A stretch of DNA of 64,000 bases, taken from contig NIVC01003105.1 in assembly GCA_002269645.1 (NCBI GenBank), positions 1-64,000 of the forward strand. Direction: 5' to 3'. A program made the position numbers and the translations under genes. The notes beneath the pieces are model-generated. The model saw nothing but the letters and a program-made list of their open reading frames with translations, made no database searches and was not told the origin of the DNA. Position 1 is the first letter of the stretch. The number at the start of each line of letters is the position of its first letter. Positions 12,101 through 62,434 of this stretch are shown here, piece after piece. The stretch is from Macrostomum lignano. Taxonomy: Eukaryota.

Positions 12101-12158
12101 ATAGACACTAAGACAGACAGACTGGCCTAACTAACTAATCCCACGTACCACCTCTCAG

Positions 12159-12590
12159 GTACCTGGAAGGCCGAGCCAGCCTGTACCGGCAGACAGTCTG
12201 CCTGTCTGGCGTCCGCTTCCCAGAGCTGAGCGGCCTGTTTGGCGGCCACATGCGCAACTGGCGCGGCAAGCTGGCTCTGAGGCCGTACTACGCCGGTCTG
12301 TACGGCGAAGCCGGTCTGCTTGGCGGCCCGCTGGCGTCCGTCGGCGCCGGGCCCCTGGCCGTCCGGTTCGTCCAGTTCGCTTCGTCCGGCCCGGCCGAGG
12401 CTTCGACGGCTCGTCTGGCCGCTTTCCGTCGGCGCCTGTTGCCATGGCTACGCGAGGGCCAGCGCCTGATCCGGGTGCTGGTGTACGCGCCCAGCTACCT
12501 GGACTGGGCGGACCTGAGGGCGGAGCTGCGCAAGGAGAGCTTGGACTTTTGCGCGATCAGCGAGTACACGCCCGCGAATAAAGCTGCCAG
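12159..12590 (+). CDS. UTP25: UTP25 exon 2
   Basis: CTCAG acceptor 12157-12158; TG+G = Trp; YLEGRASLYRQTVCLS...ISEYT; GT donor at 12591. Confidence 0.9.
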
Positions 12591-12664
12591 GTTCGGGCTG
12601 GGGAAGGAAGGAGGGTGAATGCTTTTCCAGTGTCCGGCAGGCTAGATAGAGGTTGAGATTTCAA

Positions 12665-40482: not shown

Positions 40483-43400
40483 ATGAAAATCATCATCACA
40501 ATATTACTACTTGCTTCAGTTATTTATAGAAGTGGTAAGTTCTGGAACTGAATTAAATTTCTAGTATTAATATAGTAAGAATTTAATTATTTATCTAAGT
40601 TTTTAACTATCAATATTATAGATGCAATTGCCACTATGGCAATTGATTTGGGTTCTGAGTTCATGAAAATTGCTATTGTGAAGGTAAGTAAACTTGTGAA
40701 TTCAATCTATTGTTTAAAAATTCATTCTGTTCATAAGTCCACAAGTTATATCCTTACACTATTTTTTAGCCTGGTGTTCCAATGGAGATTGCACTAAACA
40801 GGTATGTTGAAAATATGTTAATAAATGATTTAGAAGCCTTATATTTTTAGTTGGCTTGTAAAATAATGAAAACTAATTCCATAATAACACAATGATGTTT
40901 GCAGGGAGTCACAAAGGAAAACACCTGTTGTTGTTGGCATGCGAAATGATGAACGCCAAATTGGTGATCCAGCCCTGTCTATGGTAAATATTCATTCATC
41001 TGTACATTTCTATGCCTTAGTATGCAATAACAAATTCTAGACATTGTTTCTCTCAATATTTTCATTTTTCAGGCTGTGAAATTCCCACAAAATGCTTTCA
41101 TTTTCATACCAACACTGATTGGTCAGTCACTTAATAGTCCAGCTGTGAAGCTGTTCCAGGAGCGCTTCCCTTATTATAAGCTCTCTGAGGACAATGAGGG
41201 CGTTCTGACCTTTACTACTGTGAAGTAAGTTTTTGTTTTATGCCAAGCATTTTAAACTGTTTAGATTTGCGTGCAATGTCAAATAGTATGCACATGATCT
41301 ATGTCTTTTCTTTCTTCGTCTAATAGTGTACATCGCTCAGTGTACATCAGTGTTGATCATCTCCCTAATAATGTACATTGCTGAGTGTACATCAGTCTAG
41401 GTTATCTTCCTAATAATGTACATTGCTGAGTGTACATCAGTCTAGGTTATCTCCCTAATAGTGTACATTGCTCAGTGTACATCAGTCTTGGTCATCTCCC
41501 TAATAGTGTACATTGCTCAGTGTACACCAGTCTTGATCATCTCCCTAATAGTGTACATTGCTCAATGTACACCAGTCTTGATCATCTCCCTAATAATGTA
41601 CATTAGTCTTCGTCATCTCCCTAATTATGCAAATTGCATCAGATGTACCACCATCTTTACCTCCAATCTTTATTTTAATTTCATAAACATTTTCAGCAAC
41701 AAGAAGCTAACTGTAGAAGAGATCCTTGCCATGCTGCTGGAGAATGCCCAGGAGACTGCTCAGAAATTCGCTGACCAACCCATCAAAGATGCGGTGATCA
41801 CGGTGCCGCCGTACTTTAGCCAAGCCGAGCGCCTCGCCGTCCTTCGGGCAGCGGATTATGCCGGCATCACCGTGCTGCAACTAATGAACTCCAATGCTGC
41901 GGGTAAATATCATTTCTCGTCCTGATTAGTCTACTGTGAGTAGCAATCAAAGAATATTAGTACTATATATTATTCTTTCTTATATCTAAACTTGTAAACA
42001 GTGGCTCTGAACTTCGGCATCTTTCGATCGAAAAGTTTCAACAAGACCGCGCAGTACTACATGTTCTACGATATGGGATCTTCATCAACTATTGCCACCG
42101 TTGTCTGTAAGTGTTGTTTTTTGGTATAGTCTGTTTGTTCCTGTTGTCAGCAGAAAGTGAATTTGTTAGTATTCATAAAACAGCTTACACACTCCTCCTA
42201 GCTACTGAACATAAGTAGCCAACAAGCTATAATCTCCCCTCCCCCCTTGCGAACCCCATGGCAGCCTATCAAGTGGCTCGAATCCGCGAGCACGGCATGG
42301 CTGAAGAGCATCCTCAGCTGCAGGTACTCGGCGTTGGCTACGACGAGACACTTGGCGCCAGCGCTTTCATTCTTCGGCTGCGCGACCACCTGGCGAAGGA
42401 GTTCAACGCTAAGAAGTTGTCTAAGAAAGACATCACGGGCAATGCGAGGGCTATGGCTAAACTGTTTAAGGAGGCTGGCAGAGTCTACAGGGTGCTCAGC
42501 GCTAATAAGGAGGTCTATGCTCAGGTGAGACAGTCTGCGATTTTGAAAGTGCATATTGGGATAATTTTCCCATATGTATCTTTTTTAAGCCTGTCTTTTT
42601 AGCATCTTAAATGGCCTTTGTTTCTAAAAGGCCTTTGTGAACTCATAATCCTTAGTGGGATAATTTCCCCAAATTTCTCTTTAAGGTCATAATCCTTTAA
42701 TGGGATCTCATCCTAATTCTTCAATCTTCAATGGGATGATTATCCCTAATCTCTCCTTAATTCTTCAATCTTCAATGGGATGATTATCCCTAATCTGTCC
42801 CTAATTCCTTAATCTTCAATGGGATAATTATTCCTAATCTCTCCCTAATTGCTCAATCTTCAATGGGATAATTATCCCTAATCTCTCCCTAATTCCTCAA
42901 TCTTCAATGGGATGATTGTTCAATGGGTAAAACGTCGGTTGAACCTCAATCCAGATCGAGAGCGTATTCGAGGACAAAGACTTCAAAGTGAAGGTCACCC
43001 GCGAGGAGCTGGAGAACATCTGCTCGGACCTGTTCGAACGGGTCACCAGACCGATTGAAAGCGCGCTAAATATGGCCCAGATCTCGATGGACCTGATCAA
43101 AGAAGTGCTGCTCATGGGCGGCGGCACCCGCAATCCCAAGGTGCAGTCGGCTCTGCTCAAAGCCACCGGAAGGTAACGCTTGGCCTTCTAGAATGGATGA
43201 ATTCGATACACCCATCCTTAATTTCTGACCCTTAAGTATTTTATATACTTTATTGTTCCCAGAACTGAGCTGGGCAAGTCCATCAACACGGACGAAGCCG
43301 CTGCACTGGGCGCCGTGTACCAGGCCGCCCATCTGAGTCCGGGCTTTCGGGTTAAGCGATTCGTTGTCAAGGACGCCGTTTTGTTCCCCCTAGCAGTGAG

Positions 43401-46400
43401 TGATTGTTGCTGCTGTTAATTTTATTGGCGCAGCCCCACGCCACTTCAGGCTCTCCCTGACACCAATCCAGGCTTTCCATGACACCAATCCAGGCTGTCC
43501 CTGACACCAATCCAGGCTGTCCCTGACACCAATCCAGGCTGTCCCTGACACCAATCCAGGCTGTCCCTGACACCAATCCAGGCTGTCCCTGACACCAATC
43601 CAGGCTTTCCATGACACCAATCCAGGCTGTCCCTGACACCAATCCAGGCTGTCCCTGACACCAATCCAGGCTGTCCCTGACACCAATCCAGGCTGTCCCT
43701 GACACCAATCCAGGCTGTCCCTGACACCAATCCAGGCTGTCCCTGACACCAATCCAGGCTGTCCCTGACACCAATCCAGGCTGTCCCTGACACCAATCCA
43801 GGCTTTCCCTGACACCAATCCAGGCTGTCCCTGACACCAATCCAGGCTTTCCCTGACACCAATCCAGGCTCTCCCTGACACCAATACAGGCTGTCCCTGA
43901 CCCCAATCCAGGCTTTCCATGACACCAATCCAGGCTGTCCCTGACACCAATCCAGGCTCTCCCTGTTACCAATCCAGGATCTCCCTGACACCAATACAGG
44001 CTGTCCCTGACCCCAATCCAGGCTTTCCATGACACCAATCCAGGCTGTCCCTGACACCAATCCAGGCTGTCCCTGACACCAATCCAGGCTGTCCCTGACA
44101 CCAATCCAGGCTGTCCCTGACACCAATCCAGGCTTTCCCTGACACCAATCCAGGCTCTCCCTGACACCAATACAGGCTGTCCCTGACACCAATCCAGGCT
44201 CTCCCTGACACCAATCCAGGCTCTCCCTGACACCAATCCAGGCTGTCCCTGACACCAATCCAGGCTGTCCCTGACACCAATCCAGGCTTTCCCTGACACC
44301 AATCCAGGCTCTCCCTGACACCAATACAGGCTGTCCCTGACCCCAATCCAGGCTTTCCATGACACCAATCCAGGCTGTCCCTGACACCAATCCAGGCTGT
44401 CCCTGACACCAATCCAGGCTGTCCCTGACCCCAATCCAGGCTTTCCATGACACCAATCCAGGCTGTCCCTGACACCAATCCAGGCTGTCCCTGACACCAA
44501 TCCAGGCTGTCCCTGACACCAATCCAGGCTTTCCCTGACACCAATCCAGGCTCTCCCTGACACCAATACAGGCTGTCCCTGACACCAATCCAGGCTCTCC
44601 CTGACACCAATCCAGGCTCTCCCTGACACCAATCCAGGCTTTCCCTGACACCAATCCAGGCTCTCCCTGACACCAATCCAGGCTGTCCCTGACACCAATC
44701 CAGGCTTTCCCTGACACCAATCCAGGCTCTCCCTGACACCAATACAGGCTGTCCCTGACACCAATCCAGGCTCTCCCTGTTACCAATCCAGGATCTCCCT
44801 GACACCAATACAGGCTGTCCCTGACACCAATCCAGGCTCTCCCTGACACCAATCCAGGCTCTCCCTGACACCAATCCAGGCTCTCCCTGACACCAATCCA
44901 GGCTCTCCCTGACACCAATCCAGGCTCTCCCTGACACCACTTCAGGCTCTCCCTGACACCAATCCAGGCTCTCCCTGACACCAATCCAGGCTCTCCCTGA
45001 CACCACTCCAGGCTCTCCCTGACACCAATCCAGGCTCTCCCTGACACCAATCCAGGCTCTCCCTGACACCACTCCAGGCTCTCCCTGGCACCAATCCAGG
45101 CTCTCCCTGACACCAATCCAGGCTCTCCCTGACACCAATGCAGACCCCCAGACTATATTCGTCATTTACTGCTCAATGCTAATTCAGGTGGACTTCAAAA
45201 CCGCCGAGGACGGCAAAGAGATCAAACGCTTGCTATTTAACCTTGGCAACCACTATCCCCAGCGTAAGGTCATGACCTTCAATAAGCACACGCAGGATTT
45301 CGACTTCTCTGTAGGCTATACTAGCCTCAACCATTTGAACGAGTTTCAACAAAAGTAAGTAGTAGCTTTAATTTGGTGTTGGAGTTGTGTATAGTGCTGT
45401 CAGATACACCCCTGTGGCCTAATTACCTCTCCGCCAATTTTCAGAGCCCTTGGCGACCCGCTGCTGTACAAATTCAGTCTGAAAGGCGTAGCCCAGGCTA
45501 TTGGCAAATACGATGGCCAACCGGGCGCCTCTAGCAAAGGCGTCAAGGCGCACTTCCGTATGGACGATAACGGCATTGTGCACCTGGATCGGGCCGAGGC
45601 TCAGTTTGAGATTCTGCCGCAGGCTGCCGGCTCGGATGGGGAAGCCAAAAAAGAGGAGGGATCCGCGTTTGCCAGTGAGTTTCGGGGTCCTTGTAATACT
45701 CTATGATAGTTTTCGTCATGTCTTAAGCAAGATATAATGCCCCCTCCATGACCTCATCTCTGCTTTCATCATTAAACTAATGACTAATCCCGTCATCGCT
45801 TTTTAAATTGCCATCCTGGATGACCGCATCCCGGATGACCGCATCCCGGATGACCCCATTCCAGATGACCCCATCCCAGAATTGATTTTTAAATTGCCAT
45901 CCTGGATGACCGCATCCCGGATGACCGCATCCCGGATGACCGCATCCCGGATGACCGCATCCCGGATGACCGCATCCCGGATGACCCCATCCCATTTGAC
46001 CCCATCCCAGATGATCCCATCCCATATGACCCCATCCCATATGACCCCATCCCAGAATTGATCCCATCCCAAATGACCCCATTTCAGATGACCCCATTCC
46101 AGAATTCAACCCATCCCAGAATTCACCCCCTTCCAGACGACCCCAATCCCATACCAAATGACCCTTTACATTGACCCCTAGCTGACATGATCTGGTCTCT
46201 ATGACTGCCACCATGATGTCCCTAAAAGCGCTTTCGCACTATGCCTACCCCTTATTAAACACGTGAGAGCTGAAAATACTTCATGGCACTGCCTGCAGAA
46301 ATTGGCGAATCTCTTGGCAGCCTCTTCGGGTCCAGCGAAGCGGACAAGGTGAGCAAGTTGTCTATTTCTGATATCCTTTGTATAGCAGTGCATATATCCT

Positions 46401-49400
46401 GATCCCCGATCCCCACTCCAATCTCTCTCTATCAGAAAGCCGATGAAGCCAGCGGCGCTGACAAGCAGCAGGAGAAATCAAAGGAAGATTCTTCGAGTAA
46501 ACCAGCTGACAAAGACTCGACAAAGACTAATGCTGAGCCGGGAGAGGTGAGCCACTGAGGTCTGTTCTAGATTTGCGTTGTAGAAATCTTGGAAAATTTT
46601 CATTTTTAAATAATTTGCAGAAAACCGGCGACTCGACCGCGTCAGGCAACGCTTCGAAAGCTTCCGGCGACAAGGCCGCTCAGAGTAATAATAATACTAA
46701 TAAGTCGGAATCCGCCGCCACGCCCGCCAAGCCTGAGCTGCGCAGAGAATCCATTGAATTTGTTGTCGCTGACAAAACTCTGGTGCATCCGTCCGATGCT
46801 AGTCAGCAGAAATCTCGAAGCACGTGAGTTAATGCCGACTCGAGCCTAGGACCTTCTCTTAGTATTCAATCGCCAATATTTTAGTCCCTAAACTGAGGAC
46901 AGAATGTTTAGAATTTTCAAGCTGGATATTCGAACTCAGGACCTCTGTAAAATTATCATCGCTAAAATATTTAATTCCAACTTGTGTATCCCTAAAATGT
47001 TTTTACCTGACTTGAAGGTCGGGGGTTCGATTCCCGAACCCACTGGAACAATTTGTGTCTAAGCAAGTCCGCATGGCTTCAGTTCACCCAACTGTAAAAT
47101 GGGTGCCAGAATTAGCTGGGGTAATTGAGGGTGTGTGGCGACCCCCCCAGTCCTTGGACTGAACAGCCGTACGCAGCCTTCAGATGCGCCGCGCAATAGC
47201 TGCGGCTGAGCTGTCGGTTGCACATCTGGCCATTAGGACAGGTGTAATCAATTATTATTACCTGATGGAATCGAACTCAGGACCACAGCCGTTTACCATA
47301 GTCAAGTAATGCCACCCCGTCATCAATTCAACACGCGTCACAGAATTCAAGAGCTGCGCAAACGCGAAGATGCCAAACGCCAATTGGAGAAGGCTCGCAA
47401 CGAATTAGAGGCTTTCATCTTCGAGTCCAAGGATCGGCTGAGCTCGGCTGACTATGAGAAGTGCTCAACTGAGTCCGAACGTCAAGGCTATATGGAAAAG
47501 CTGTCCGCTGCTCAGGTGCGCTCCTCGCAACTGTTTGTGTTACCAGCTATGATCTTCTGAAATTAAAATTGACTCAATCCTTCGTAACAACCTGTTTATC
47601 ATCAAATGACCTATTATGGCCTGTGCATCATAAAAATATCGCATTATGACCCAGTTTGACCCATTTTTTAGCCAGTTGGATTCCATTTGACCCATTATGA
47701 CCCAGTTTGACCTACTCACCCATTTTGACTCAGTTTGACCCATTATGACCCAGTTTGGCCCTTTATGACCTAGTTTGACCCATTATGACCTAGTTTAACC
47801 CTTTTTGACCCAGACACTTTATGACAATGACACCTTATGACTCAGAGTCTTTATGACCCAGACCCATTATAACCCAGTCGGCCCCTTTATGGCCAAGAGT
47901 CTTTTTTTGACCCAGACACTTTATGACCCAGTTTGACCCATATTTATCTCTCCCTTGACCCCAAGTGACCCAAAATGACCTTTGACCTTATTTACACCCT
48001 ACTGCCAGGACTGGTACGACGAGCAGGGCATGGACACAACGCAGGAGCAATTCGCGGCCAAAACCGCCGAACTAAAAGCCATGCTAGGCGATCTGACGCT
48101 TCGTGTTCGAGAAATGCTCGAACGACCGAAAGCTTTTAAACTGCTGAAGGATATGCTGAATCATACTCGAACTTTCTGGGACACCATGCAGAACATGACA
48201 GGAGATGGCAACGTGTTCACGCAGGCTGAGTACAACACGCTGGGAAATCTGATCAATGACACTGAGGTGAGCGCCTCTATTAATGTCTTTTTTCAAGCTT
48301 TCCTCTTCTTTATTCATAATAATTACAGTAATTCTCTACTCAATTTCATTTTTGGTGACAAAGACGTCTATAAGCTGGATTCGGAGTACATTGCTTAACA
48401 GTCAGTCAGTCAGTCAGTCAGTCAGTCAGTCAGTCAGTCAGTCAGTCAGTCAGTCAGTCAGTCAGTCAGTCAGTCAGTCAGTCAGTCAGTCAGTCAGTCA
48501 GTCAGTCAGTCAGTCAGTCAGTCAGTCAGTCAGTCAGTCAGTCAGTCAGTCAGTCAGTCAGTCAGTCAGTCAGTCAGTCAGTCAGTCAGTCAGTCAGTCA
48601 GTCAGTCAGTCAGTCAGTCAGTCAGTCAGTCAGTCAGTCAGTCAGTCAGTCAGTCAGTCAGTCAGTCAGTCAGTCAGTCAGTCAGTCAGTCAGTCAGTCA
48701 GTCAGTCAGGCACATACGTGCGCAACCTTGGGAATCACCCGGCCGTTTCTATTGGCAACACACACATGTAAGTCGCTATTGGCTGAGAGCAGTCACGTGA
48801 CTACTTTTCTGTCCAATAGCGACATACATGTGTGTGTGTTGCCAATAGAAACGGCCGAGTGAATCCCAAGGTTGCGCCCAAGCATGGTCAGGCAGTCAGG
48901 CAGTCAGACAGGCAGTCAGTCAGTCAGTCAGTCAGTCAGTCAGTCAGGCAGTCAGTCAGTCAGTCAGGCAGTCAGGCAGTCAGTCAGTCAGTCAGGCAGG
49001 CAGTCAGTCAGTCAGTCAGTCAGTCAGTCAGTCAGTCAGGCAGTCAGTCAGTCAGGCAGTCAGTCAGGCAGGCAGTCAGGCAGTCAGTCAGTCAGTCAGT
49101 CAGTCAGTCAGGCAGTCAGTCAGTCAGGCAGGCAGTCAGTCAGGCAGTCAGTCAGGCAGTCAGTCTCCCACATTTTTTAAATAGTGCCGAGTCAGTTGAC
49201 TCCTACTCATAGTAGTGCTTTATTACTGGTGGGAGCTTTACTTATTATTTTATTCTAATTTTGCTACTATACAAAAGGACTGGCAGAAGGCCAGACAGTT
49301 GGAGGTGGACGGCCAGGACCTCACCAAGGAGCCGCTGGTTCGGGTTGAAGACATCAGGCTGAAGATGTCAGCCCTGGAGAGGGAGATCAGCTATCTGCTA

Positions 49401-52400
49401 GGCAAAATCAAGTACTATGTGCCGCCAACTCCGAAACCAACTGAGCAGCCTAAGCAGGGTGAGTCATTCGGTCCAATAGGTCTTTGTCGTTGCCAGTCCG
49501 CTAAATTTTGTCGAGAGTTGAACCTTTCCTCTGCTTTTTTGCCTCAATTCGTTTTTTGGTTTTTCATTTTTACACGGCATTTTTTCGGCTCAATTTTGTT
49601 CTTATTTAACCCTTTTTTCTGTGTCAACCGTGATAAATTTTTGGCTTGTGATCAACTAGGACTCTATTTAAATAACTTACGTATTACTCAAATGAATACG
49701 AAATGCTCTGTCATGACCCACTGTGACCTATCATAGCCCGATATGACCCGTCATAACCTGCTCTCACCTGTTTTATGACTCAAGCTGACCTCTCTGTCGT
49801 GACCCCTATCTGACCTATCATGACTCTTATCTGACCTATCATGGCCCCTATCTGACCTATCATGACCCCTATCTGACCTATCATGACCCTTATCTGACCT
49901 ATCATGACCCCTATCTGACCTATCATGACCCTTATCTGACCTATCATGACCCTTATCTGACCTATCATGACCCCTATCTGACTTATCATGACCCCTATCT
50001 GACTTATCATGACCCTTATCTGACCTATCATGACCCCTATCTGACCTATCATGACCCTTATCTGACCTATCATGACCCCTATCTGACCTATCATGACCCT
50101 TATCTGACCTATCATGACCCCTATCTGACCTATCATGACCCCTATCTGACCTATCATGACCCCTATCTGACCTATCATGACCCCTATCTGACCTATCATG
50201 ACCCCTATCTGACCTATCATGACCCCTATCTGACCTATCATGACCCCTATCTGACTTATCATGACCCTTATCTGACCTATCATGACCCTTATCTGACCTA
50301 TCATGACCCCTTTCTGACCTATCATGACCCCTATCTGACCTATCATGACCCTTTTCTGACCTATCATGACCCTTATCTGACCTATCATGACCCTTATCTG
50401 ACCTATCATGACCCCTATCTGACCTATCATGACCCTTATCTGATCTATCATGACCCCTATCTGACCTATCATGACCCCTATCTGACCTATCATGACCCTT
50501 ATCTGACCTATCATGACCCTTATCTGACCTATCATGACCCTTATCTGACCTATCATGACCCCTATCTGACCTATCATGACCCTTATCTGATCTATCATGA
50601 CCCCTATCTGACCTATCATGACCCCTATCTGACCTATCATGACCCTTATCTGATCTATCATGACCCCTATCTGACCTATCATGACCCCTATCTGACCTAT
50701 CATGACCCTTATCTGATCTATCATGACCCCTATCTGACCTATCATGACCCTTATCTGATCTATCATGACCCCTATCTGACCTATAACAGCCTCTATCTAT
50801 AACCTTTCCTGACTCAATATTGCATCCTTTATGAGCCATTTCTAATTTTCATGACCTATTTTCATCCACCTTGACCATCTGTAAGCCGTCATGACTCAAT
50901 TCATTCTAACCATCAATCCTCGGTTTATGACGGGTCATCGTATGAGCGTATGACTAGGTAGTCTTTATCCCAGCCTATGCCCAGAGGCTCTGCGTAGCCA
51001 GCGCAGCCTCAGGCAACAGTCCGCACTCACTCGCGCGTCCTCAACAATTGCTACTCAATAATAATCAACTCAAAGCTTTGGCAAAGCGAGGCCGAACGGT
51101 CGATTAACCGGTCGGGCTGCCACCTGCCGCCAACCGTGACGTCTGCCGAAATTATTCAACGCGGCGAAGGCCTGCGAGCCCGCCTTGGCCAGTTGCTAAG
51201 GGACAAGCTGGTCCGGGTGGCCGAGTTAGAAAAGAAACGACAAGAAGCCGCCGCGGCTAAGCTGAAAGCCGAAAAGGAAGCTAAGGCTACGGCTAAGGCT
51301 AAGGCCCAGGCTAAAGCCGAACAGGCTAAGGCTAGGGCTAAAGCCGAGGCTAAGGCTAGGGCTAAAGCCGAGGCTAAGGCTAAGCGACGCAGAGGCCGAT
51401 TTATTCGACCTGGCGCCGACGGCAGCTACCGATTGGGTCGAAGGGATCGGCGCCGACTGCGCGAGATGATGCTGAGGGCGGCCATCATGCGGGAGCTGTC
51501 CGGCACGAGAACTGCTTCTTCTGGTTGCTTTTTTACCCTGATCCATTTTTTCTCCGTTTTTCTCTTTTTTGCTTCTATTTTCGGATTCAGCTGTTATTAT
51601 TTGGCGATATGCAGATTGTTTCTCGCGTCCAAGGTTTTATTCCTTTATTATGTAACATTTTGACCGTTTCCATTAATTTTCTTCATTTTTGTGGCGATTG
51701 TAATATCATTTTTTAGTAATCCCCCGATCCTTCAGTTCCCTTCTGGTATCAGTTCCCCCGATCCTTCAGTTCCCTTCTATCAGTTCCCCCCGATCCTTCA
51801 GTTCCCTTCTATCAGTTCCCCCCGATCCTTCAGTTCCCTTCTATCAGTTCCCCCCGATCCTTCAGTTCCCTTCTATCAGTTCCCCCCGATCCTTCAGTTC
51901 CCTTCTATCAGTTCCCCCCGATCCTTCAGTTCCCCCGATCCTTCAGTTCCCTTCTATCAGTTCCCCCGATCCTTCAGTTCCCTTCTGGTATCAGTTCCCC
52001 CCGATCCTTCAGTTCCCTTCTATCAGTTCCCCCCGATCCTTCAGTTCTCCCCGATCCTTCAGTTCTCCCCGATCCTTCAGTTCCCTTCTATCAGTTCCCC
52101 CCGATCCTTCAGTTCCCTTCTATCAGTTCCCCCGATCCTTCAGTTCCCCCGATCCTTCAGTTCCCCCCGATCCTTCAGTTCCCTTCTATCAGTTCCCCCG
52201 ATCCTTCAGTTCCCCCCGATCCTTCAGTTCTCCCCGATCCTTCAGTTCCCTCGATCCTTCAGTTCCCCCGATCCTTCAGTTCTCCCCGATCCTTCAGTTC
52301 CCCCCGATCCTTCAGTTCCCTTCTATCAGTTCCCCCCGATCCTTCAGTTCCCCCCGATCCTTCAGTTCTCCCCGATCCTTCAGTTCCCCTCGATCCTTCA

Positions 52401-55400
52401 GTTCCCCTCGATCCTTCAGTTCCCCTCGATCCTTCAGTTCCCCTCGATCCTTCAGTTCCCCCCGATCCTTCAGTTCCCCTCCCATCAGTTCCCCCCGATC
52501 CTTCAGTTCCCTTCTATCAGTTCCCCCCGATCCTTCAGTTCCCCTCCCATCAGTTCCCCCCGATCCTTCAGTTCCCTTCTATCAGTTCCCCCCGATCCTT
52601 CAGTTCCCTTCTATCAGTTCCCCCCGATCCTTCAGTTCCCTTCTATCAGTTCTCCCCGATCCTTCAGTTCCCCTCGATCCTTCAGTTCCCCCCGATCCTT
52701 CAGTTCCCCCGATCCTTCAGTTCCCCCGATCCTTCAGTTCCCCCGATCCTTCAGTTCCCCACGATCCTTCAGTTCCCCCGATCCTTCAGGTTCCCCCGAT
52801 CCTTCAGTTCCCCCCGATCCTTCAGTTCCCCCCGATCCTTCAGTTCCCCCGATCCTTCAGTTCCCCCGATCCTTCAGGTTCCCCCGATCCTTCAGTTCCC
52901 CCCGATCCTTCAGTTCCCCCCGATCCTTCAGTTCCCCCCGATCCTTCAGTTCCCCCCGATCCTTCAGTTCCCTTCTATCAGTTTCCCCCGATCCTTCAGT
53001 TCCCCTCCCATCAGTTCCCCCCGATCCTTCAGTTCCCCCCGATCCTTCAGTTCCCCCGATCCTTCAGTTCCCCCGATCCTTCAGTTCCCCCGATCCTTCA
53101 GTTCCCCCGATCCTTCAGTTCCCCCCGATCCTTCAGTTCCCCTCGATCCTTCAGTTCCCCGATCCTTCAGTTCCCCTCGATCCTTCAGTTCCCCCCGATC
53201 CTTCAGTTCCCCCGATCCTTCAGTTCCCTTCTATCAGTTCCCCCGATCCTTCAGTTCCCTTCTTGTATCAGTTCCCCCCGATCCTTCAGTTCCCTTCTAT
53301 CAGTTCCCCCCGATCCTTCAGTTCTCCCGATCCTTCAGTTCCCTTCTATCAGTTCCCCCCGATCCTTCAGTTCCCTTCTATCAGTTCCCCCCGATCCTTC
53401 AGTTCCCCCCGATCCTTCAGTTCCCCCGATCCTTCAGTTCCCTTCTATCAGTTCCCCCGATCCTTCAGTTCCCCCGATCCTTCAGTTCTCCCCGATCCTT
53501 CAGTTCCCCTCGATCCTTCAGTTCCCCCCGATCCTTCAGTTCTCCCCGATCCTTCAGTTCCCCCCGATCCTTCAGTTCCCTTCTATCAGTTCCCCCCGAT
53601 CCTTCAGTTCCCCCCGATCCTTCAGTTCTCCCCGATCCTTCAGTTCCCCTCGATCCTTCAGTTCCCCTCGATCCTTCAGTTCCCCTCGATCCTTCAGTTC
53701 CCCCCGATCCTTCAGTTCCCCTCCCATCAGTTCCCCCGATCCTTCAGTTCCCTTCTATCAGTTCCCCCGATCCTTCAGTTCCCCTCCCATCAGTTCCCCC
53801 CGATCCTTCAGTTCCCTTCTATCAGTTCCCCCCGATCCTTCAGTTCCCTTCTATCAGTTCCCCCCGATCCTTCAGTTCCCTTCTATCAGTTCTCCCCGAT
53901 CCTTCAGTTCCCCTCGATCCTTCAGTTCCCCCCGATCCTTCAGTTCCCCCCGATCCTTCAGTTCCCCCCGATCCTTCAGTTCCCCCCGATCCTTCAGTTC
54001 CCCGATCCTTCAGTTCCCCCGATCCTTCAGTTCCCCCCGATCCTTCAGTTCCCCCGATCCTTCAGTTCCCCCGATCCTTCAGTTCCCCCCGATCCTTCAG
54101 TTCCCCCGATCCTTCAGGTTCCCCCCGATCCTTCAGTTCCCCCGATCCTTCAGTTCCCCCGATCCTTCAGTTCCCCCGATCCTTCAGTTCCCCCGATCCT
54201 TCAGTTCCCCCGATCCTTCAGTTCCCTTCTATCAGTTCCCCCCGATCCTTCAGTTCCCCTCCCATCAGTTCCCCCCGATCCTTCAGTTCCCCCGATCCTT
54301 CAGTTCCCCCCGATCCTTCAGTTCCCCCGATCCTTCAGTTCCCCCGATCCTTCAGTTCCCCCGATCCTTCAGTTCCCCCCGATCCTTCAGTTCCCTCGAT
54401 CCTTCAGTTCCCCCGATCCTTCAGTTCCCCTCGATCCTTCAGTTCCCCCGATCCTTCAGTTCCCCCGATCCTTCAGTTCCCTCGATCCTTCAGTTCCCCC
54501 GATCCTTCAGTTCCCCGATCCTTCAGTTCCCCTCGATCCTTCAGTTCCCCCGATCCTTCAGTTCCCCTCGATCCTTCAGTTCCCCCGATCCTTCAGTTCC
54601 CCCGATCCTTCAGTTCCCCTCGATCCTTCAGTTCCCCCGATCCTTCAGTTCCCCTCGATCCTTCAGTTCCCCCGATCCTTCAGTTCCCTCGATCCTTCAG
54701 TTCCCCCGATCCTTCAGTTCCCCCGATCCTTCAGTTCCCCTCGATCCTTCAGTTCCCCTCGATCCTTCAGTTCCCCTCGATCCTTCAGTTCCCCTCGATC
54801 CTTCAGTTCCCCTCGATCCTTCAGTTCCCCCGATCCTTCAGTTCCCCCCGATCCTTCAGTTCCCCCGATCCTTCAGTTCTCCCCGATCCTTCAGTTCCCC
54901 CGATCCTTCAGTTCCCCCGATCCTTCAGTTCCCCTCGATCCTTCAGTTCCCCCGATCCTTCAGTTCCCCTCGATCCTTCAGTTCCCCGATCCTTCAGTTC
55001 CCCCGATCCTTCAGTTCCCCCGATCCTTCAGTTCCCCCGATCCTTCAGTTCCCCCGATCCTTCAGTTCCCCCGATCCTTCAGTTCCCCCGATCCTTCAGT
55101 TCCCCCGATCCTTCAGTTCCCCCGATCCTTCAGTTCCCCCCGATCCTTCAGTTCCCCCGATCCTTCAGTTCCCCCGATCCTTCAGTTCCCCTCGATCCTT
55201 CAGTTCCCTTCTATCAGTTCCCCTCGATCCTTCAGTTCCCTTCTATCAGTTCCCCCGATCCTTCAGTTCCCCTCGATCCTTCAGTTCCCTTCTATCAGTT
55301 CCCCCCGATCCTTCAGTTCCCTTCTATCAGTTCCCCCCGATCCTTCAGTTCCCTTCTATCAGTTCCCCCCGATCCTTCAGTTCCCTTCTATCAGTTCCCC

Positions 55401-58400
55401 CCGATCCTTCAGTTCCCTCGATCCTTCAGTTCCCCCCGATCCTTCAGTTCCCTCGATCCTTCAGTTCCCCCGATCCTTCAGTTCCCCTCGATCCTTCAGT
55501 TCCCCCCGATCCTTCAGTTCCCCTCGATCCTTCAGTTCCCCCCGATCCTTCAGTTCCCCTCGATCCTTCAGTTCCCCCGATCCTTCAGTTCCCCTCGATC
55601 CTTCAGTTCCCCCCGATCCTTCAGTTCCCCCGATCCTTCAGTTCCCCCGATCCTTCAGTTCCCCCCGATCCTTCAGTTCCCCTCGATCCTTCAGTTCCCC
55701 CGATCCTTCAGTTCCCCTCGATCCTTCAGTTCCCGATCCTTCAGTTCCCCTCGATCCTTCAGTTCCCCCGATCCTTCAGTTCCCCGATCCTTCAGTTCCC
55801 CCCGATCCTTCAGTTCCCTTCTATCAGTTCCCCCCGATCCTTCAGTTCCCTTCTGGTATCAGTTCCCCCCGATCCTTCAGTTCCCTTCTATCAGTTCCCG
55901 CCGATCCTTCAGTTCCCTTCTATCAGTTCCCCCCGATCCTTCAGTTCCCTCTATCAGTTCCCCCCGATCCTTCAGTTCCCTTCCTTCAGTTCCCCCGATC
56001 CTTCAGTTCCCTTCTATCAGTTCCCCCGATCCTTCAGTTCCCCCGATCCTTCAGTTCTCCCCGATCCTTCAGTTCCCTCGATCCTTCAGTTCCCCTCGAT
56101 CCTTCAGTTCCCCCAATCCTTCAGTTCCCCTCGATCCTTCAGTTCTCCCCGATCCTTCAGTTCCCCTCGATCCTTCAGTTCCCCTCGATCCTTCAGTTCC
56201 CCCGATCCTTCAGTTCCCCCGATCCTTCAGTTCCCCCGATCCTTCAGTTCTCCCCGATCCTTCAGTTCCCCTCGATCCTTCAGTTCCCCCCGATCCTTCA
56301 GTTCCCCTCGATCCTTCAGTTCTCCCCGATCCTTCAGTTCCCCTCGATCCTTCAGTTCCCCCCGATCCTTCAGTTCCCCCGATCCTTCAGTTCCCCCGAT
56401 CCTTCAGTTCCCCGATCCTTCAGTTCCCCCCGATCCTTCAGTTCCCCCCGATCCTTCAGTTCCCCCCGATCCTTCAGTTCCCCCGATCCTTCAGTTCCCC
56501 CGATCCTTCAGTTCCCCCGATCCTTCAGTTCCCCTCGATCCTTCAGTTCCCTTCTATCAGTTCCCCTCGATCCTTCAGTTCCCTTCTATCAGTTCCCCCG
56601 ATCCTTCAGTTCCCCTCGATCCTTCAGTTCCCTTCTATCAGTTCCCCCCGATCCTTCAGTTCCCTTCTATCAGTTCCCCCCGATCCTTCAGTTCCCTTCT
56701 ATCAGTTCCCCCGATCCTTCAGTTCCCTTCTATCAGTTCCCCCCGATCCTTCAGTTCCCCTCGATCCTTCAGTTCCCCCGATCCTTCAGTTCCCTTCTAT
56801 CAGTTCCCCCCGATCCTTCAGTTCCCCTCGATCCTTCAGTTCCCCCCGATCCTTCAGTTCCCCTCGATCCTTCAGTTCCCCCCGATCCTTCAGCTCCCCT
56901 CGATCCTTCAGTTCCCCCCGATCCTTCAGTTCCCCTCGATCCTTCAGTTCCCCCCGATCCTTCAGTTCCCCTCGATCCTTCAGTTCCCCCGATCCTTCAG
57001 TTCCCCCCGATCCTTCAGTTCCCTTCTATCAGTCCCCCCCGATCCTTCAGTTCCCCTCGATCCTTCAGTTCTCCCCGATCCTTCAGTTCCCCTCGATCCT
57101 TCAGTTCCCCTCGATCCTTCAGTTCCCCTCGATCCTTCAGTTCCCCCCGATCCTTCAGTTCCCCTCGATCCTTCAGTTCTCCTCGATCCTTCAGTTCCCC
57201 TCGATCCTTCAGTTCCCCCCGATCCTTCAGTTCCCCCCGATCCTTCAGTTCCCTTCTATCAGTTCCCCCCGATCCTTCAGTTTCCTTCTATCAGTTCTCC
57301 CCGATCCTTCAGTTCCCCTCGATCCTTCAGTTCCCCTCGATCCTTCAGTTCCCCTCGATCCTTCAGTTCCCCCCGATCCTTCAGTTCCCCTCGATCCTTC
57401 AGTTCTCCTCGATCCTTCAGTTCCCCTCGATCCTTCAGTTCCCCCCGATCCTTCAGTTCCCCCCGATCCTTCAGTTCCCTTCTATCAGTTCCCCCCGATC
57501 CTTCAGTTCCCTTCTATCAGTTCTCCCCGATCCTTCAGTTCCCCTCGATCCTTCAGTTCCCCCGATCCTTCAGTTCCCCCGATCCTTCAGTTCCCCCGAT
57601 CCTTCAGTTCCCCCCGATCCTTCAGTTCCCCACGATCCTTCAGTTCCCCCGATCCTTCAGGTTCCCCCGATCCTTCAGTTCCCCCGATCCTTCAGTTCCC
57701 CCCGATCCTTCAGTTCCCCCGATCCTTCAGTTCCCCCCGATCCTTCAGGTTCCCCCGATCCTTCAGTTCCCCCCGATCCTTCAGTTCCCCCGATCCTTCA
57801 GTTCCCCCCGATCCTTCAGTTCCCCCGATCCTTCAGTTCCCCCGATCCTTCAGTTCCCTTCTATCAGTTCCCCCGATCCTTCAGTTCCCCTCCCATCAGT
57901 TCCCCCGATCCTTCAGTTCCCCCCGATCCTTCAGTTCCCCCGATCCTTCAGTTCCCCCGATCCTTCAGTTCCCCTCGATCCTTCAGTTCCCCCCGATCCT
58001 TCAGTTCCCCCCGATCCTTCAGTTCCCCTCGATCCTTCAGTTCTCCCCGATCCTTCAGTTCCCCTCGATCCTTCAGTTCCCCCCGATCCTTCAGTTCCCC
58101 TCGATCCTTCAGTTCCCCCCAATCCTTCAGTTCCTCTCGATCCTTCAGTTCTCCCCGATCCTTCAGTTCCCCTCGATCCTTCAGTTCCCCTCGATCCTTC
58201 AGTTCCCCCCGATCCTTCAGTTCCCCTCGATCCTTCAGTTCCCCCCAATCCTTCAGTTCCCCTCGATCCTTCAGTTCCCCTCGATCCTTCAGTTCCCCCC
58301 GATCCTTCAGTTCCCCTCGATCCTTCAGTTCCCCCCAATCCTTCAGTTCCCCTCGATCCTTCAGTTCTCCCCGATCCTTCAGTTCCCCTCGATCCTTCAG

Positions 58401-61400
58401 TTCCCCTCGATCCTTCAGTTCTCCCCGATCCTTCAGTTCCCCTCGATCCTTCAGTTCCCCTCGATCCTTCAGTTCCCCTCGATCCTTCAGTTCCCCCCGA
58501 TCCTTCAGTTCCCCTCGATCCTTCAGTTCTCCCCGATCCTTCAGTTCCCCCCGATCCTTCAGTTCCCCCCGATCCTTCAGTTCTCCCCGATCCTTCAGTT
58601 CCCCTCGATCCTTCAGTTCCCCCCGATCCTTCAGTTCCCCTCGATCCTTCAGTTCTCCCCGATCCTTCAGTTCCCCTCGATCCTTCAGTTCCCCCCGATG
58701 CTTCGGTTCCCCCCGATCCTTCAGTTCCCCCGATCCTTCAGTTCCCCTCGATCCTTCAGTTCCCCCGATCCTTCAGTTCCCCCGATCCTTCAGTTCCCCC
58801 GATCCTTCAGTTCCCCCGATCCTTCAGTTCCCCCCGATCCTTCAGTTCCCCCCGATCCTTCAGTTCCCCTCGATCCTTCAGTTCCCTTCTATCAGTTCCC
58901 CTCGATCCTTCAGTTCCCTTCTATCAGTTCCCCCCGATCCTTCAGTTCCCCTCGATCCTTCAGTTCCCTTCTATCAGTTCCCCCCGATCCTTCAGTTCCC
59001 TTCTATCAGTTCCCCCCGATCCTTCAGTTCCCTTCTATCAGTTCCCCCCGATCCTTCAGTTCCCTTCTATCAGTTCCCCCCGATCCTTCAGTTCCCCTCG
59101 ATCCTTCAGTTCCCCCCGATCCTTCAGTTCCCTTCTATCAGTTCCCCCCGATCCTTCAGTTCCCCTCGATCCTTCAGTTCCCCCCGATCCTTCAGTTCCC
59201 CTCGATCCTTCAGTTCCCCCGATCCTTCAGCTCCCCTCGATCCTTCAGTTCCCCCCGATCCTTCAGTTCCCCTCGATCCTTCAGTTCCCCCCGATCCTTC
59301 AGTTCCCCTCGATCCTTCAGTTCCCCCCGATCCTTCAGTTCCCCCCGATCCTTCAGTTCCCTTCTATCAGTCCCCCCCGATCCTTCAGTTCCCCTCGATC
59401 CTTCAGTTCTCCCCGATCCTTCAGTTCCCCTCGATCCTTCAGTTCCCCTCGATCCTTCAGTTCCCCTCGATCCTTCAGTTCCCCCCGATCCTTCAGTTCC
59501 CCCCGATCCTTCAGTTCCCCCCGATCCTTCAGTTCCCTTCTATCAGTTCCCCCCGATCCTTCAGTTCCCTTCTGGTATCAGTTCCCCCCGATCCTTCAGT
59601 TCCCTTCTATCAGTTCCCCCCGATCCTTCAGTTCTCCCCGATCCTTCAGTTCCCTTCTATCAGTTCCCGCCGATCCTTCAGTTCCCTTCTATCAGTTCCC
59701 CCCGATCCTTCAGTTTCCCCCGATCCTTCAGTTCCCCCCGATCCTTCAGTTCCCTTCTATCAGTTCCCCCCGATCCTTCAGTTCCCCCCGATCCTTCAGT
59801 TCTCCCCGATCCTTCAGTTCCCCTCGATCCTTCAGTTCCCCTCGATCCTTCAGTTCCCCCCAATCCTTCAGTTCCCCTCGATCCTTCAGTTCTCCCCGAT
59901 CCTTCAGTTCCCCTCGATCCTTCAGTTCCCCTCGATCCTTCAGTTCCCCCGATCCTTCAGTTCCCCCGATCCTTCAGTTCCCCCGATCCTTCAGTTCTCC
60001 CCGATCCTTCAGTTCCCCTCGATCCTTCAGTTCCCCCGATCCTTCAGTTCCCCTCGATCCTTCAGTTCTCCCCGATCCTTCAGTTCCCCTCGATCCTTCA
60101 GTTCCCCCGATCCTTCAGTTCCCCCCGATCCTTCAGTTCCCCCGATCCTTCAGTTCCCCTCGATCCTTCAGTTCCCCCCGATCCTTCAGTTCCCCCGATC
60201 CTTCAGTTCCCCCGATCCTTCAGTTCCCCCGATCCTTCAGTTCCCCCGATCCTTCAGTTCCCCCGATCCTTCAGTTCCCCTCGATCCTTCAGTTCCCTTC
60301 TATCAGTTCCCCTCGATCCTTCAGTTCCCTTCTATCAGTTCCCCCGATCCTTCAGTTCCCCTCGATCCTTCAGTTCCCTTCTATCAGTTCCCCCGATCCT
60401 TCAGTTCCCTTCTATCAGTTCCCCCCGATCCTTCAGTTCCCTTCTATCAGTTCCCCCGATCCTTCAGTTCCCTTCTATCAGTTCCCCCCGATCCTTCAGT
60501 TCCCCTCGATCCTTCAGTTCCCCCCGATCCTTCAGTTCCCTTCTATCAGTTCCCCCCGATCCTTCAGTTCCCCTCGATCCTTCAGTTCCCCCGATCCTTC
60601 AGTTCCCCTCGATCCTTCAGTTCCCCCCGATCCTTCAGCTCCCCTCGATCCTTCAGTTCCCCCCGATCCTTCAGTTCCCCTCGATCCTTCAGTTCCCCCG
60701 ATCCTTCAGTTCCCCTCGATCCTTCAGTTCCCCCGATCCTTCAGTTCCCCCGATCCTTCAGTTCCCTTCTATCAGTCCCCCCCGATCCTTCAGTTCCCCT
60801 CGATCCTTCAGTTCTCCCCGATCCTTCAGTTCCCCTCGATCCTTCAGTTCCCCTCGATCCTTCAGTTCCCCTCGATCCTTCAGTTCCCCCCGATCCTTCA
60901 GTTCCCCTCGATCCTTCAGTTCTCCTCGATCCTTCAGTTCCCCTCGATCCTTCAGTTCCCCCCGATCCTTCAGTTCCCCCCGATCCTTCAGTTCCCTTCT
61001 ATCAGTTCCCCCGATCCTTCAGTTTCCTTCTATCAGTTCTCCCCGATCCTTCAGTTCCCCTCGATCCTTCAGTTCCCCTCGATCCTTCAGTTCCCCTCGA
61101 TCCTTCAGTTCCCCCCGATCCTTCAGTTCCCCTCGATCCTTCAGTTCTCCTCGATCCTTCAGTTCCCCTCGATCCTTCAGTTCCCCCCGATCCTTCAGTT
61201 CCCCCCGATCCTTCAGTTCCCTTCTATCAGTTCCCCCCGATCCTTCAGTTTCCTTCTATCAGTTCCCCCCCGATCCTTCAGTTCCCCCCGATCCTTCAGT
61301 TCCCCTCGATCCTTCAGTTCCCCTCGATCCTTCAGTTCCCCCCGATCCTTCAGTTCCCCTCGATCCTTCAGTTCCCCCCGATCCTTCAGTTCCCCTCGAT

Positions 61401-62434
61401 CCTTCAGTTCCCCCCGATCCTTCAGTTCCTTTCGATCCTTCAGTTCCCCCTGATCCTTCAGTTCCCCCCGATCCTTCAGTTCCCTTCTATCAGTTCCCCC
61501 CGATCCTTCAGTTCCCCTCGATCCTTCAGTTCCCCCCGATCCTTCAGTTCCCTTCTATCAGTTCCCCCCGATCCTTCAGTTCCCTTCTATCAGTTCCCCT
61601 CGATCCTTCAGTTCCCCCCGATCCTTCAGTTCCCTTCTATCAGTTCCCCTCGATCCTTCAGTTCCCCACGATCCTTCAGTTCCCCCCGATCCTTCAGTTC
61701 CCCCCGATCCTTCAGTTCCCCCGATCCTTCAGTTCCCTTCTATCAGTTCCCCCGATCCTTCAGTTCCCCCCGATCCTTCAGTTCTCCCCGATCCTTCAGT
61801 TCCCCCGATCCTTCAGTTCCCCCGATCCTTCAGTTCCCCTCGATCCTTCAGTTCCCCCCGATCCTTCAGTTCCCCCCGATCCTTCAGGTTCCCCCGATCC
61901 TTCAGTTCCCCCGATCCTTCAGTTCCCCCCGATCCTTCAGTTCCCCTCGATCCTTCAGTTCCCCCCAATCCCTAAAATATTTAATTATATGTTATTCCTT
62001 ATTTCTTATTCCATCTTTCAATCTCATAATCCAATTTGTCAGACGCCCGCTTACTCATTACTGATTATAAATGCAACCAATTCATAATTTTCCTCATCAA
62101 CTCGCTTCCAGATTCCGACCCCAAGAAGCCCGATGCAGATTCGACTTCGTCCTCTTCTGAGCAGCAGAAGCCACCCGGCAGTGCTGAGGAGCAAAAGCCG
62201 CAGGACGAAGGCGCCACTCCGCCGCCGACAATTCCGCCGCCGCCGCCACCACCGCCGCAGCAGCAGCCCTCAGCTGATGAGGTGGAGTCTGGCGACATCG
62301 ATTCGAACTCGGGCAGCTCCCGAGACGAGTCGTCGTCTCAAAGTCGGGGTCGTGACGACGAGCGCGACCACCGCGACGACGGCGAGGACCGGCGCTCGTC
62401 CCGCGGCAGCCACGACCCAGACGATGAGCTGTGA
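40483..62434 (+). CDS. HYOU1: Hypoxia up-regulated protein 1 (GRP170/ORP150), ER-luminal Hsp110-type chaperone, ~997 aa, 19 exons
   Basis: Exons 40483-40534, 40622-40683, 40770-40801, 40905-40983, 41073-41224, 41697-41902, 42002-42106, 42265-42524, 42955-43172, 43263-43395, 45188-45354, 45445-45674, 46299-46348, 46436-46546, 46621-46823, 47344-47515, 48009-48266, 49278-49458, 62112-62434. All introns are GT-AG and phase-consistent, summing to 2994 nt. Signal peptide, [58 protein letters not shown] and C-terminal DDEL. Confidence 0.95.
41322..41625. repeat. 45-bp minisatellite in HYOU1 intron 5
   Basis: GTGTACATTGCTCAGTGTACA(T/C)CAGTCTTG(G/A)TCATCTCCCTAATA copies. Confidence 0.9.
42700..42925. 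repeat. ~43-bp repeat in HYOU1 intron 8
   Basis: AATCTTCAATGGGATAATTATCCCTAATCTCTCCCTAATT copies. Confidence 0.85.
43445..45140. repeat. 22-bp minisatellite (CCCTGACACCAATCCAGGCTGT) filling HYOU1 intron 10
   Basis: 1.7-kb array occupying nearly the whole intron. Confidence 0.97.
45790..46160. repeat. 15-bp repeat (CATCCCGGATGACCG) in HYOU1 intron 12
   Basis: Tandem and degenerate copies. Confidence 0.88.
47011..47260 (+). mobile_element. 5'-truncated copy of the CORE-like SINE in HYOU1 intron 15, with 8-bp target-site duplication
   Basis: Closely matches 15205-15465, with a deletion in the core. TTACCTGA occurs at 47003-47010 and 47258-47265; (ATT)n tail. Confidence 0.88.
47640..47985. repeat. 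Degenerate GACCCAGTTTGACCCATTAT repeat in HYOU1 intron 16
   Basis: Recurrent TGACCC-cored units. Confidence 0.8.
48399..49165. repeat. (AGTC)n microsatellite (48399-48708) and (AGTC/AGGC)n (48890-49165) flanking a palindrome
   Basis: Direct reading. Confidence 0.97.
48720..48877. other. Palindromic fold-back element (63/65-bp arms), MITE-like
   Basis: 48720-48782 is the reverse complement of 48813-48877 with 3 mismatches and one 2-nt indel. Central perfect palindrome AGTCACGTGACT at 48791-48802. Confidence 0.9.
49278..49458 (+). CDS. HYOU1: HYOU1 exon 18a (canonical C-terminal helical segment)
   Basis: DWQKARQ...[28 protein letters not shown] aligns with remembered human AWKNAT...KPVLLSKDIEAKMMALDREVQYLLNKAK. 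Phase 0 to phase 1. Confidence 0.9.
49790..50790. repeat. 21-bp minisatellite (GACCCCTATCTGACCTATCAT) between exons 18a and 18b
   Basis: 1-kb homogeneous array. Confidence 0.97.
51076..51523 (+). CDS. HYOU1: HYOU1 candidate alternative exon 18b (diverged duplicate of 18a with Lys/Ala/Arg-rich extension)
   Basis: GC-rich open frame in intron 18 that aligns without gaps to exon 18a. AAAG acceptor in phase 0; weak phase-1 donor G|GTTGCT at 51524. The exact 3' boundary is uncertain. Confidence 0.62.
51720..61970. repeat. 10.2-kb satellite of 16-17-bp units (GATCCTTCAGTTCCCC[C]) with CCCTTCTATCAGTT insertions, in the last HYOU1 intron
   Basis: Continuous array. Diagnostic variants (CAGCTCCC at 56891, 59228, 60636) mark higher-order block copies. 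Confidence 0.99.
62112..62434 (+). CDS. HYOU1: HYOU1 terminal exon, acidic tail ending in ER-retention signal DDEL
   Basis: TTCCAG acceptor 62110-62111, phase 1; ...HDPDDEL-stop. Confidence 0.9.

Follow-up and report, generated by a model that had tools for sequence, protein, structure and literature searches.

The stretch of DNA analysed here (the window, 64,000 nucleotides; locus L002) is identical to contig NIVC01003105.1 of the Macrostomum lignano assembly GCA_002269645.1, and carries a gene for the chaperone HYOU1/GRP170, whose last intron holds a long open frame that may be an alternative coding exon. Canonical HYOU1 proteins of animals (GRP170, ORP150) and yeast Lhs1 are large Hsp70-like chaperones of the endoplasmic reticulum (ER) lumen and nucleotide-exchange factors for BiP. 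GRP170 recharges BiP and holds unfolded clients; it is viewed as soluble in the lumen, where a KDEL-type signal retains it. The exon structure was obtained by exact mapping of the deposited protein PAA53296.1 (P0122) onto the window, combined with a search for splice junctions. The gene spans 40474–62434 on the + strand and contains 19 exons, and all 18 introns are of the GT-AG type. The annotated product, of 1000 amino acids (aa), follows the path from exon 18a to exon 19. This mapping confirms the exon numbering and the junctions of exons 17, 18a and 19 given in an initial annotation of the stretch, which had also proposed that a diverged duplicate of exon 18, here called 18b, lies in the last intron.

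The host gene is an unambiguous HYOU1/GRP170 orthologue. PAA53296.1 matches the Pfam HSP70 family with 298 bits over residues 27–625, and PF27508 (HYOU1_C) is present among the precomputed database hits for this protein. The 120 best matches to it are all HYOU1-named (42–57% identity) and not Hsp110 or Hsp70. By eye, the N-terminus has a hydrophobic leader resembling a signal peptide, and the C-terminus is KDEL-like (...HDPDDEL). The conserved exon with the pattern W...KP.L.VEDI..K..ALDREVKYL.NKAK is also present.

There are three near-identical HYOU1 loci in the assembly (L001, L002 and L003), which share their downstream neighbours, a gene for a 233-aa protein and a CDP-alcohol phosphatidyltransferase gene. 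The copies differ by about 0.4% in exons and 1.9% in introns. Their repeat lengths are strongly unlike, with gene spans of 15.2, 22.0 and 22.8 kb. Hidden polyploidy has been described for M. lignano (PMC10468722), and the three near-identical loci fit this condition.

The last intron consists largely of two satellites, between which lies a unique island with the 18b frame (Table 1). The island is present in all three copies and diverges between them by 0.23%, similar to the exons (0.40%) and below the introns (1.9%). Since the divergence of the copies is uneven across introns, ranging from 0 to 5%, this exon-like conservation is suggestive only. A comparison of the three copies as a test of selection was abandoned, since they are too alike, with 1–3 substitutions in the 18b exon.

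Table 1. Exons, repeats and parts of the 18b frame in the 3' part of the HYOU1 gene (window coordinates; a slash marks an exon boundary here and in the text; TRF, Tandem Repeats Finder; PWM, position weight matrix).
Feature	Coordinates	Strand	Remarks
Exon 17	48009..48266	+	Last shared exon; ends ...NLINDTE, phase 0; donor GAG/GTGAGC; exact protein mapping
Exon 18a, canonical last-helix exon	49278..49458	+	DWQKARQ...EQPKQ(G); phase-1 exit at AGG/GTGAGT; exact protein mapping
21-bp satellite, 47 copies	49800..50784	.	5' side of the unique island, last intron; TRF
Unique island holding the 18b frame	50785..51720	+	Sits between the two satellites; present in 3/3 M. lignano HYOU1 copies
Putative 18b acceptor AG	51074..51075	+	CAACTCAAAG/CTT, phase 0; PWM 3.5 bits, falls in the true-acceptor range
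18b N-terminal module, 47 aa	51076..51216	+	Sequence comparison indicates homology with the beginning of the Lineus alternative exon and, more remotely, with canonical exons of the 18 type
Lys/Ala/Glu-rich helical spacer	51208..51384	+	Includes a 24-bp tandem repeat, 51296-51382; Lineus exon has a Lys/Glu-rich counterpart
Arg-rich basic stretch	51385..51522	+	Net charge +11; Lineus counterpart RRMLRHRGRAARRRGKH
Donor proposed in the initial annotation, CTG/GTTGCT	51524..51525	+	PWM -2.5 bits; probably not a functional donor
Hydrophobic C-terminal tail, 45 residues	51526..51660	+	Predicted membrane anchor; R-x-F-LASK-V resembles Lineus RSWLASKL
18b stop codon TGA	51661..51663	+	Ends the 18b frame
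18-bp satellite, 10.2 kb, ~598 copies	51721..61971	.	Fills the remainder of the last intron; TRF
Exon 19, canonical acidic tail	62112..62434	+	Ends ...HDPDDEL + stop codon; exact protein mapping

The frame is free of stops from 50998 to the TGA at 51661–51663 (221 codons), and is longer than the stretch used in the initial annotation. In Markov simulations of the same composition, a frame of this length has a probability of about 0.0005–0.005. Read from 51076, it begins LWQSEAERS..., comprises 195 codons up to its own stop, and contains the AKAE-type repeats and the Arg-rich stretch that had been described. The two exons indeed both follow AAAG acceptors in phase 0, as initially annotated: the junction check gives TTGCTACTATACAAAAG/GAC for 18a and TTGCTACTCAATAATAATCAACTCAAAG/CTT for 18b. 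Codon usage in the 18b frame is exon-like (0.70–0.97 bits per codon, versus about 0.13 in the other frames), with the signal restricted to about 51076–51523 and falling off on both sides. Each of the three copies keeps the frame open up to and including residue 156 (window about 51540), and all indels within this part are in frame, including differences in the number of spacer repeats (+51 nt in one copy, +12/−24 nt in another). There is no genomic ATG in this frame ahead of residue 131. A single-sequence AlphaFold2 model of 18b contains helices at residues 3–10, 23–109 and 122–194, with predicted local distance difference test (pLDDT) values of 82–93 for the greater part of the spacer and about 95 for the tail; the model carries little weight, but it is consistent with this layout. 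A Pfam scan of the 18b peptide gave no significant match, with weak sub-threshold hits to unrelated families; the scanned library did not contain PF27508 (HYOU1_C), so the result is uninformative for that family, for peptides of 18a as well as of 18b. An Rfam search over 50700–51800 found nothing, and an exact look-up of the 175-aa open reading frame (ORF) in the assembly index found it not to be on record.

The resemblance between 18a and 18b is, by itself, no better than chance. The gapless 41-residue alignment of the initial annotation, with its 8 listed identities, was reproduced, with a BLOSUM62 score of 23. This is the best non-self match of 18a in the window (shuffle P = 5e-5); however, the median best chance match of 192 other HYOU1 41-mers is 24, and the 18b frame is the best chance match of 9 unrelated HYOU1 segments, some of them scoring 32–39. 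A profile of exon 18 built from 102 Grp170 orthologues, with M. lignano left out, gave 50.1 bits to 18a, while the 18b frame reached only 4.4 bits (E = 3.1). The hidden Markov model comparison with the Grp170 family suggested initially is not significant on its own. The family-invariant motif DRE..Y..NK is missing from 18b. BLASTP of 18a against 18b found nothing in the register of the initial alignment (E = 1.0, in another register), and hhalign with the entire Grp170 alignment placed 18b in the wrong region (probability 0.3%). Nor does a shared 8-mer, TTGCTACT, exceed chance: it has many equally long coincidental counterparts, and a nucleotide comparison of the two exon regions yields nothing beyond chance 8–10-mers. 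Given this chance-level pair, the interpretation of 18b as a copy of exon 18 would have been rejected before the cross-species evidence presented below.

This evidence comes from the nemertean Lineus longissimus, whose HYOU1-like locus (L004, OU343009.1:10197097-10221727) has NCBI-predicted isoforms X1–X14, annotated as 'hypoxia up-regulated protein 1-like'. They form two families that part exactly after ...LINDTT. The canonical forms (X9, X12–X14) continue with DWRKKAL...ALDREVKYLLNKAK... and end in ...HDPSDL. The alternative forms (X1–X6, X8 and X10) continue with MWMNTMEEAQNKTACTKTPVLL..., followed by Lys/Glu-rich and Arg-rich segments, and end in ...LLSVSLNLRIFILLLAILILVRSWLASKLWP and a stop codon. 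A single alternative exon is used by X1–X8 and X10 (e.g. XP_064650565.1 and XP_064650568.1), with the LINDTT exon joined to it directly. It comprises 259 codons with its own stop (L004:18659-19435), has an AAG acceptor (TTTTCAAG/), and is located between the canonical 18a-type exon (about 17441–17668) and the next canonical exon (20385). Its hydrophobic tail has a maximum hydropathy of 2.53. Isoform X7 (P0133) uses the first 112 codons of this exon, leaves through an internal donor (G/GTAAAG) in phase 1 to the canonical tail, and ends in ...HDPSDL. Mapping by tblastn, to within 1 nt, places the entry into the alternative exon at L004 16772^18659 and the exit to the canonical tail at 18992^20385. 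In isoform X11 (P0136), the 18a-type exon is joined out of frame to the alternative exon, resulting in a premature end. A product of the X11 type would be expected to undergo nonsense-mediated decay, and an 18a-18b join in M. lignano is predicted to have the same outcome.

The boundary between exons 17 and 18 in M. lignano falls at the same residue as the Lineus branch point. The first 23, 30, 41 and 47 residues of the Lineus alternative exon were compared without gaps against every stop-free segment of the window in six frames (38,000–57,000 segments). The single best match was always at 51076 on the + strand, with scores of 36, 30, 30 and 41 versus 22, 27, 26 and 21 for the runners-up, and an in-register shuffle gave P<=2e-5. 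Since the exon-start probes match at exactly 51076, the start of 18b is fixed independently of the splice-site analysis. Reciprocally, the beginning of M. lignano 18b matches L004:18659 first (scores 36 and 41), and with 47 residues the start of the canonical Lineus exon comes second (22).

The alternative exons are also related to canonical exon 18. A canonical exon-18 profile built with both species left out recovers the Lineus alternative exon in register, with 17.8 bits and E = 1.2e-4 among 497 ORFs. The best match of the Lineus alternative probe is the start of the canonical exon in Lingula (44 and 33) and in Capitella, and that of the M. lignano 18b probe is the start of the canonical exon in the chiton Liolophura (27 versus 11 among 5,395 segments). 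When both alternative exons were aligned together with the canonical profile using hhalign, the probability was 78% (E = 1.9e-5), with W2, P19 and I26 in the register of the initial alignment. A 10-mer probe with the LASK motif ranked third of 84,096, at 51607, which is supportive, not decisive; BLASTP of the C-terminal tails was swamped by low-complexity noise. Taken together, the Lineus-probe, reciprocal, profile and hhalign results indicate that M. lignano 18b and the Lineus alternative exon are orthologous, and that both probably descend from a duplication of an exon of the 18 type. The comparisons support 18b as a genuine coding module in the right position and phase, and it is probably a real, old and diverged copy of exon 18. 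The initial proposal of a diverged duplicate is supported transitively, via the Lineus exon and the matches to the chiton and Lineus canonical exons, although not by the 18a/18b pair itself, which stays at chance level.

The two alternative exons share a common layout, with a W-containing helix, a Cys/Pro loop, a long charged helix, an Arg-rich stretch, a hydrophobic tail and a stop codon of their own. In both species, the branch occurs after LINDT[TE] in phase 0, the alternative exon lies in the intron immediately after the canonical last-helix exon, and its acceptor is of the AAG type. Similarity in register extends over the first 47 residues (W2, E7, N11, C15 and P19, among others), and the motif R-x-[WF]-LASK-[LV] follows the hydrophobic core of the tail. 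In neither species does the frame survive a join of the 18a-type exon with the alternative exon. However, the Lineus exon is longer (259 versus 195 codons) and Lys/Glu-rich, whereas that of M. lignano is Ala/Lys-rich. The strong internal donor after residue 112 in Lineus has no counterpart in M. lignano, and the Lineus exon fits the canonical profile alone (17.8 bits) while the M. lignano exon does not (4.4 bits).

Splice sites were scored using a PWM built from the gene's own 18 sites. The acceptor of 18a, ACAAAAG/ (49271–49277), is the weakest in the gene (leave-one-out score of −0.9 bits); the other 17 annotated acceptors all read CAG or TAG. Weak AAG acceptors in front of both 18a and 18b would suit a regulated choice. 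At the other end, the segment 51076–51523 (448 nt) allows a phase-1 exit, so the arithmetic behind the exit to the DDEL exon in the initial annotation is right. The donor proposed for this exit, CTG/GTTGCT at 51523, is not supported for M. lignano: it scores −2.5 bits, versus 2.4–14.9 bits for the 18 real donors, and about one third (32%) of the gene's GT sites do at least as well. The real donors read GTR in 18 of 18 cases, with A at +4 in 17, and no phase-1 donor in the 18b exon scores above zero. When 18a is joined to 18b, the frame shifts and a stop is reached after 10 codons, so that the two exons are mutually exclusive in a productive mRNA.

The weak donor, the frame that runs through the tail to its own stop, and the similar behavior of most Lineus isoforms favor an alternative last exon, and from these sequence features 18b is more likely to be one than a cassette in M. 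lignano. The initially proposed pair of mutually exclusive exons holds in that the 18a-18b join breaks the frame and that Lineus splices LINDTT directly to the alternative exon; it fails in lacking a usable donor to a common downstream exon. Likewise, in place of the proposed isoform of ~1086 aa with a basic extension and DDEL, the second isoform is more likely to be membrane-anchored, without DDEL, and of ~1025 aa, which corresponds to exons 1–17 (830 residues from Met) plus 195 residues.

On this basis, we lean slightly towards 18b (51076 to the stop at 51661–51663) being a real, old alternative coding exon of HYOU1/GRP170, which would have arisen by tandem duplication of the last-helix exon and then been extended by a charged helix, an Arg-rich stretch and a hydrophobic tail. 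The use of 18b in M. lignano, the termination of its transcript within the intron and the membrane anchoring of its product are steps that we infer. The exon-17 donor at 48266 would pick between the weak AAG acceptors at 49278 (18a) and 51076 (18b). Choosing 18a would give the annotated soluble ER-luminal chaperone ending in DDEL, while choosing 18b would give a transcript that ends inside the intron. The ~1025-aa product of the latter would keep both the nucleotide-binding and the substrate-binding domain, as well as most of the helical lid, unchanged; the last helix would be swapped for its diverged copy, and a C-terminal anchor on a long helical spacer would place the protein at a membrane without a KDEL-type signal. 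In an evolutionary scenario that we hold only tentatively and would not yet call probable, a duplicate of the last-helix exon gained the long single-helix spacer, basic stretch and anchor before the nemertean and flatworm lineages split. Since then, a soluble, KDEL-retained form would have coexisted with one tethered to a membrane. The tethered form would bring nucleotide exchange for BiP and holdase activity to the ER membrane; were the signal peptide skipped, it would instead be tail-anchored on the cytosolic face of that membrane.

A number of observations weigh against an alternative last exon of this kind. None of the three HYOU1 copies has the 18b exon in its deposited annotation. A word-indexed search of 5.8 billion proteins with the 18b peptide returned a single low-complexity match and not the peptide itself (the spliced peptide of exons 17, 18a and 19 also had no match there, an effect of the word index), and a full HMMER search of 1.84 billion representatives returned only three low-complexity matches to the AKAE repeat. 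BLASTP between the full alternative exons of M. lignano and Lineus is not significant (E = 4 and 25), and the significance of this pair is confined to the in-register comparison anchored at the exon start. The Lineus isoforms are themselves automatic gene predictions. No 18b-type exon was found in Capitella, where there is no intron at this position, in Lingula, whose intron there measures only about 420 bp, in the chiton locus, or in any of ~45 predicted isoforms from molluscs, Lingula and amphioxus; as a consequence, the comparison, and with it the age and distribution of the exon, rests on M. lignano and one other species. The codon score of the hydrophobic tail is non-coding-like when judged against a model of soluble proteins. 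In copy L001 (contig NIVC01000930.1) only, a 1-bp insertion at L001:23135-23140 (window ~51541; CCCTGGATCC versus CCCTGATCC) shifts the frame of the tail, which may be either a long-read homopolymer or assembly error or the start of decay in that copy. No AATAAA, ATTAAA or close variant was found in 51600–52000, a weak negative, as AATAAA-type sequences may not be the signal of M. lignano. If the signal peptide is kept, the basic stretch preceding the anchor would be luminal, contrary to the positive-inside rule.

Other explanations were weighed against the same data. It is rather unlikely that 18b is a relic, that is, an ancestral functional exon shared with nemerteans that M. lignano has stopped splicing and that is slowly decaying. 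Such a relic would agree with the missing annotation in the three copies, the weak acceptor, the lack of a donor and of a detected poly(A) signal, and the frame-shifted tail of L001; yet the frame has stayed open over 195–221 codons in 3/3 copies, longer than expected by chance, its codon usage and between-copy divergence are exon-like, and exon 18a, which is used, has a still weaker acceptor. A cassette form that rejoins exon 19 does exist among the predicted nemertean isoforms, and is unlikely in M. lignano because there is no usable donor. In this arrangement, 18b would be an internal exon, exclusive with 18a, leaving at 51523 in phase 1 for exon 19 and yielding the soluble protein of ~1086 aa with DDEL. 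The correct phase, the predicted X7 isoform, which does exactly this via G/GTAAAG, the end of the exon-like codon usage near 51523 and the position of the L001 indel just beyond it all speak for such an exit. We nevertheless consider it quite improbable, as the candidate donor falls below all 18 real donors (minimum 2.4 bits), no other phase-1 donor exceeds zero, and the Lineus donor is located after residue 112, not before the tail, with no M. lignano equivalent.

About 30% of M. lignano genes are trans-spliced to a spliced leader, CGGTCTCTTACTGCGAAGACTCAATTTATTGCATG (PMC8629364). The leader ends in ATG and, joined at 51076, would be exactly in frame, producing M+LWQSE..., a tail-anchored protein of 196 aa separate from HYOU1; the lack of a genomic in-frame ATG before residue 131 is in keeping with a nested gene of this type. 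This is very improbable, since the orthologous exon in Lineus is always spliced to the HYOU1 body in the predicted isoforms, the acceptor TCAAAG is unlike the trans-splice motif [T/C]TNCAG (PMC8629364), and no such gene is annotated. Finally, a chance frame in a GC-rich, repeat-containing intron, with a coincidental likeness to 18a, would be in keeping with the chance-level 18a/18b pair, the absence of database homologues and the ability of the AKAE repeat to keep two frames open. It is scarcely credible given that the Lineus probe is best at exactly 51076 (+) among up to 57,000 segments with the reciprocal search in agreement, that a chiton canonical exon is the best match of the 18b probe, and that the ORF length has P ~1e-3.

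Literature searches found no membrane-anchored or mutually exclusive-exon form of GRP170, no membrane-tethered counterpart for any large Hsp70-type chaperone, and no mention of these Mlig gene IDs. To our knowledge, the only isoform variation of HYOU1 is N-terminal and concerns signal-less cytosolic forms. The M. lignano gene resembles canonical HYOU1 in its Hsp70-type domains, conserved last-helix exon and KDEL-like end, and the putative membrane-anchored form with a duplicated exon would set it apart from the forms found in those searches. Tandem mutually exclusive exons are well known from tropomyosin, Dscam and many ion-channel genes. Like these, 18a and 18b are adjacent, on the same strand, of the same 5' phase and, by the comparisons above, related, and including both breaks the frame. 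However, classic pairs are similar in length and rejoin the same downstream exon, whereas 18b has ~150 extra codons, its own stop and no usable donor in M. lignano, and so would behave as an alternative last exon. Another parallel may be the immunoglobulin mu heavy chain, whose secreted and membrane forms are generated via alternative last exons. In mu, as would be the case for 18b, the choice of the 3' end decides between a soluble form and one with a hydrophobic C-terminal anchor on an otherwise identical protein body. In contrast to mu, the 18b switch would also cost the protein its ER-retention signal and exchange a structural helix in the lid of the chaperone, and the use of a poly(A) site is putative here.

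If the preferred interpretation of 18b as an alternative last exon is correct, its conservation in two phyla would imply that the location of GRP170 activity, and not just its amount, is regulated in some animals. The tethered form, on its rigid charged spacer, could be situated near translocons or the ER-associated degradation (ERAD) machinery. M. lignano is transformable and amenable to RNA interference, making isoform-specific knock-down and tagging feasible. The case also holds a lesson for annotation: 18b is missing from the deposited models and undetectable by sequence similarity alone, and it was found by comparing isoform layouts across species.

Tandem repeats make up ~52% of the window according to TRF, the two satellites of the last intron included; further arrays are found at 43447–45139, 49001–49165 and elsewhere. 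Intron 15 contains, at window ~47016–47160, a tRNA-like segment (GGTTCGATTCCCGAACC...) resembling a tRNA-derived short interspersed nuclear element; this intron is also the most diverged among the HYOU1 copies. Upstream of HYOU1, open frames with a coding look are located at 2682–4811, 9443–10201 and 12139–12615, all on the + strand, and by eye include acyl-CoA-oxidase-like and TFIIS-N/IWS1-like sequences.

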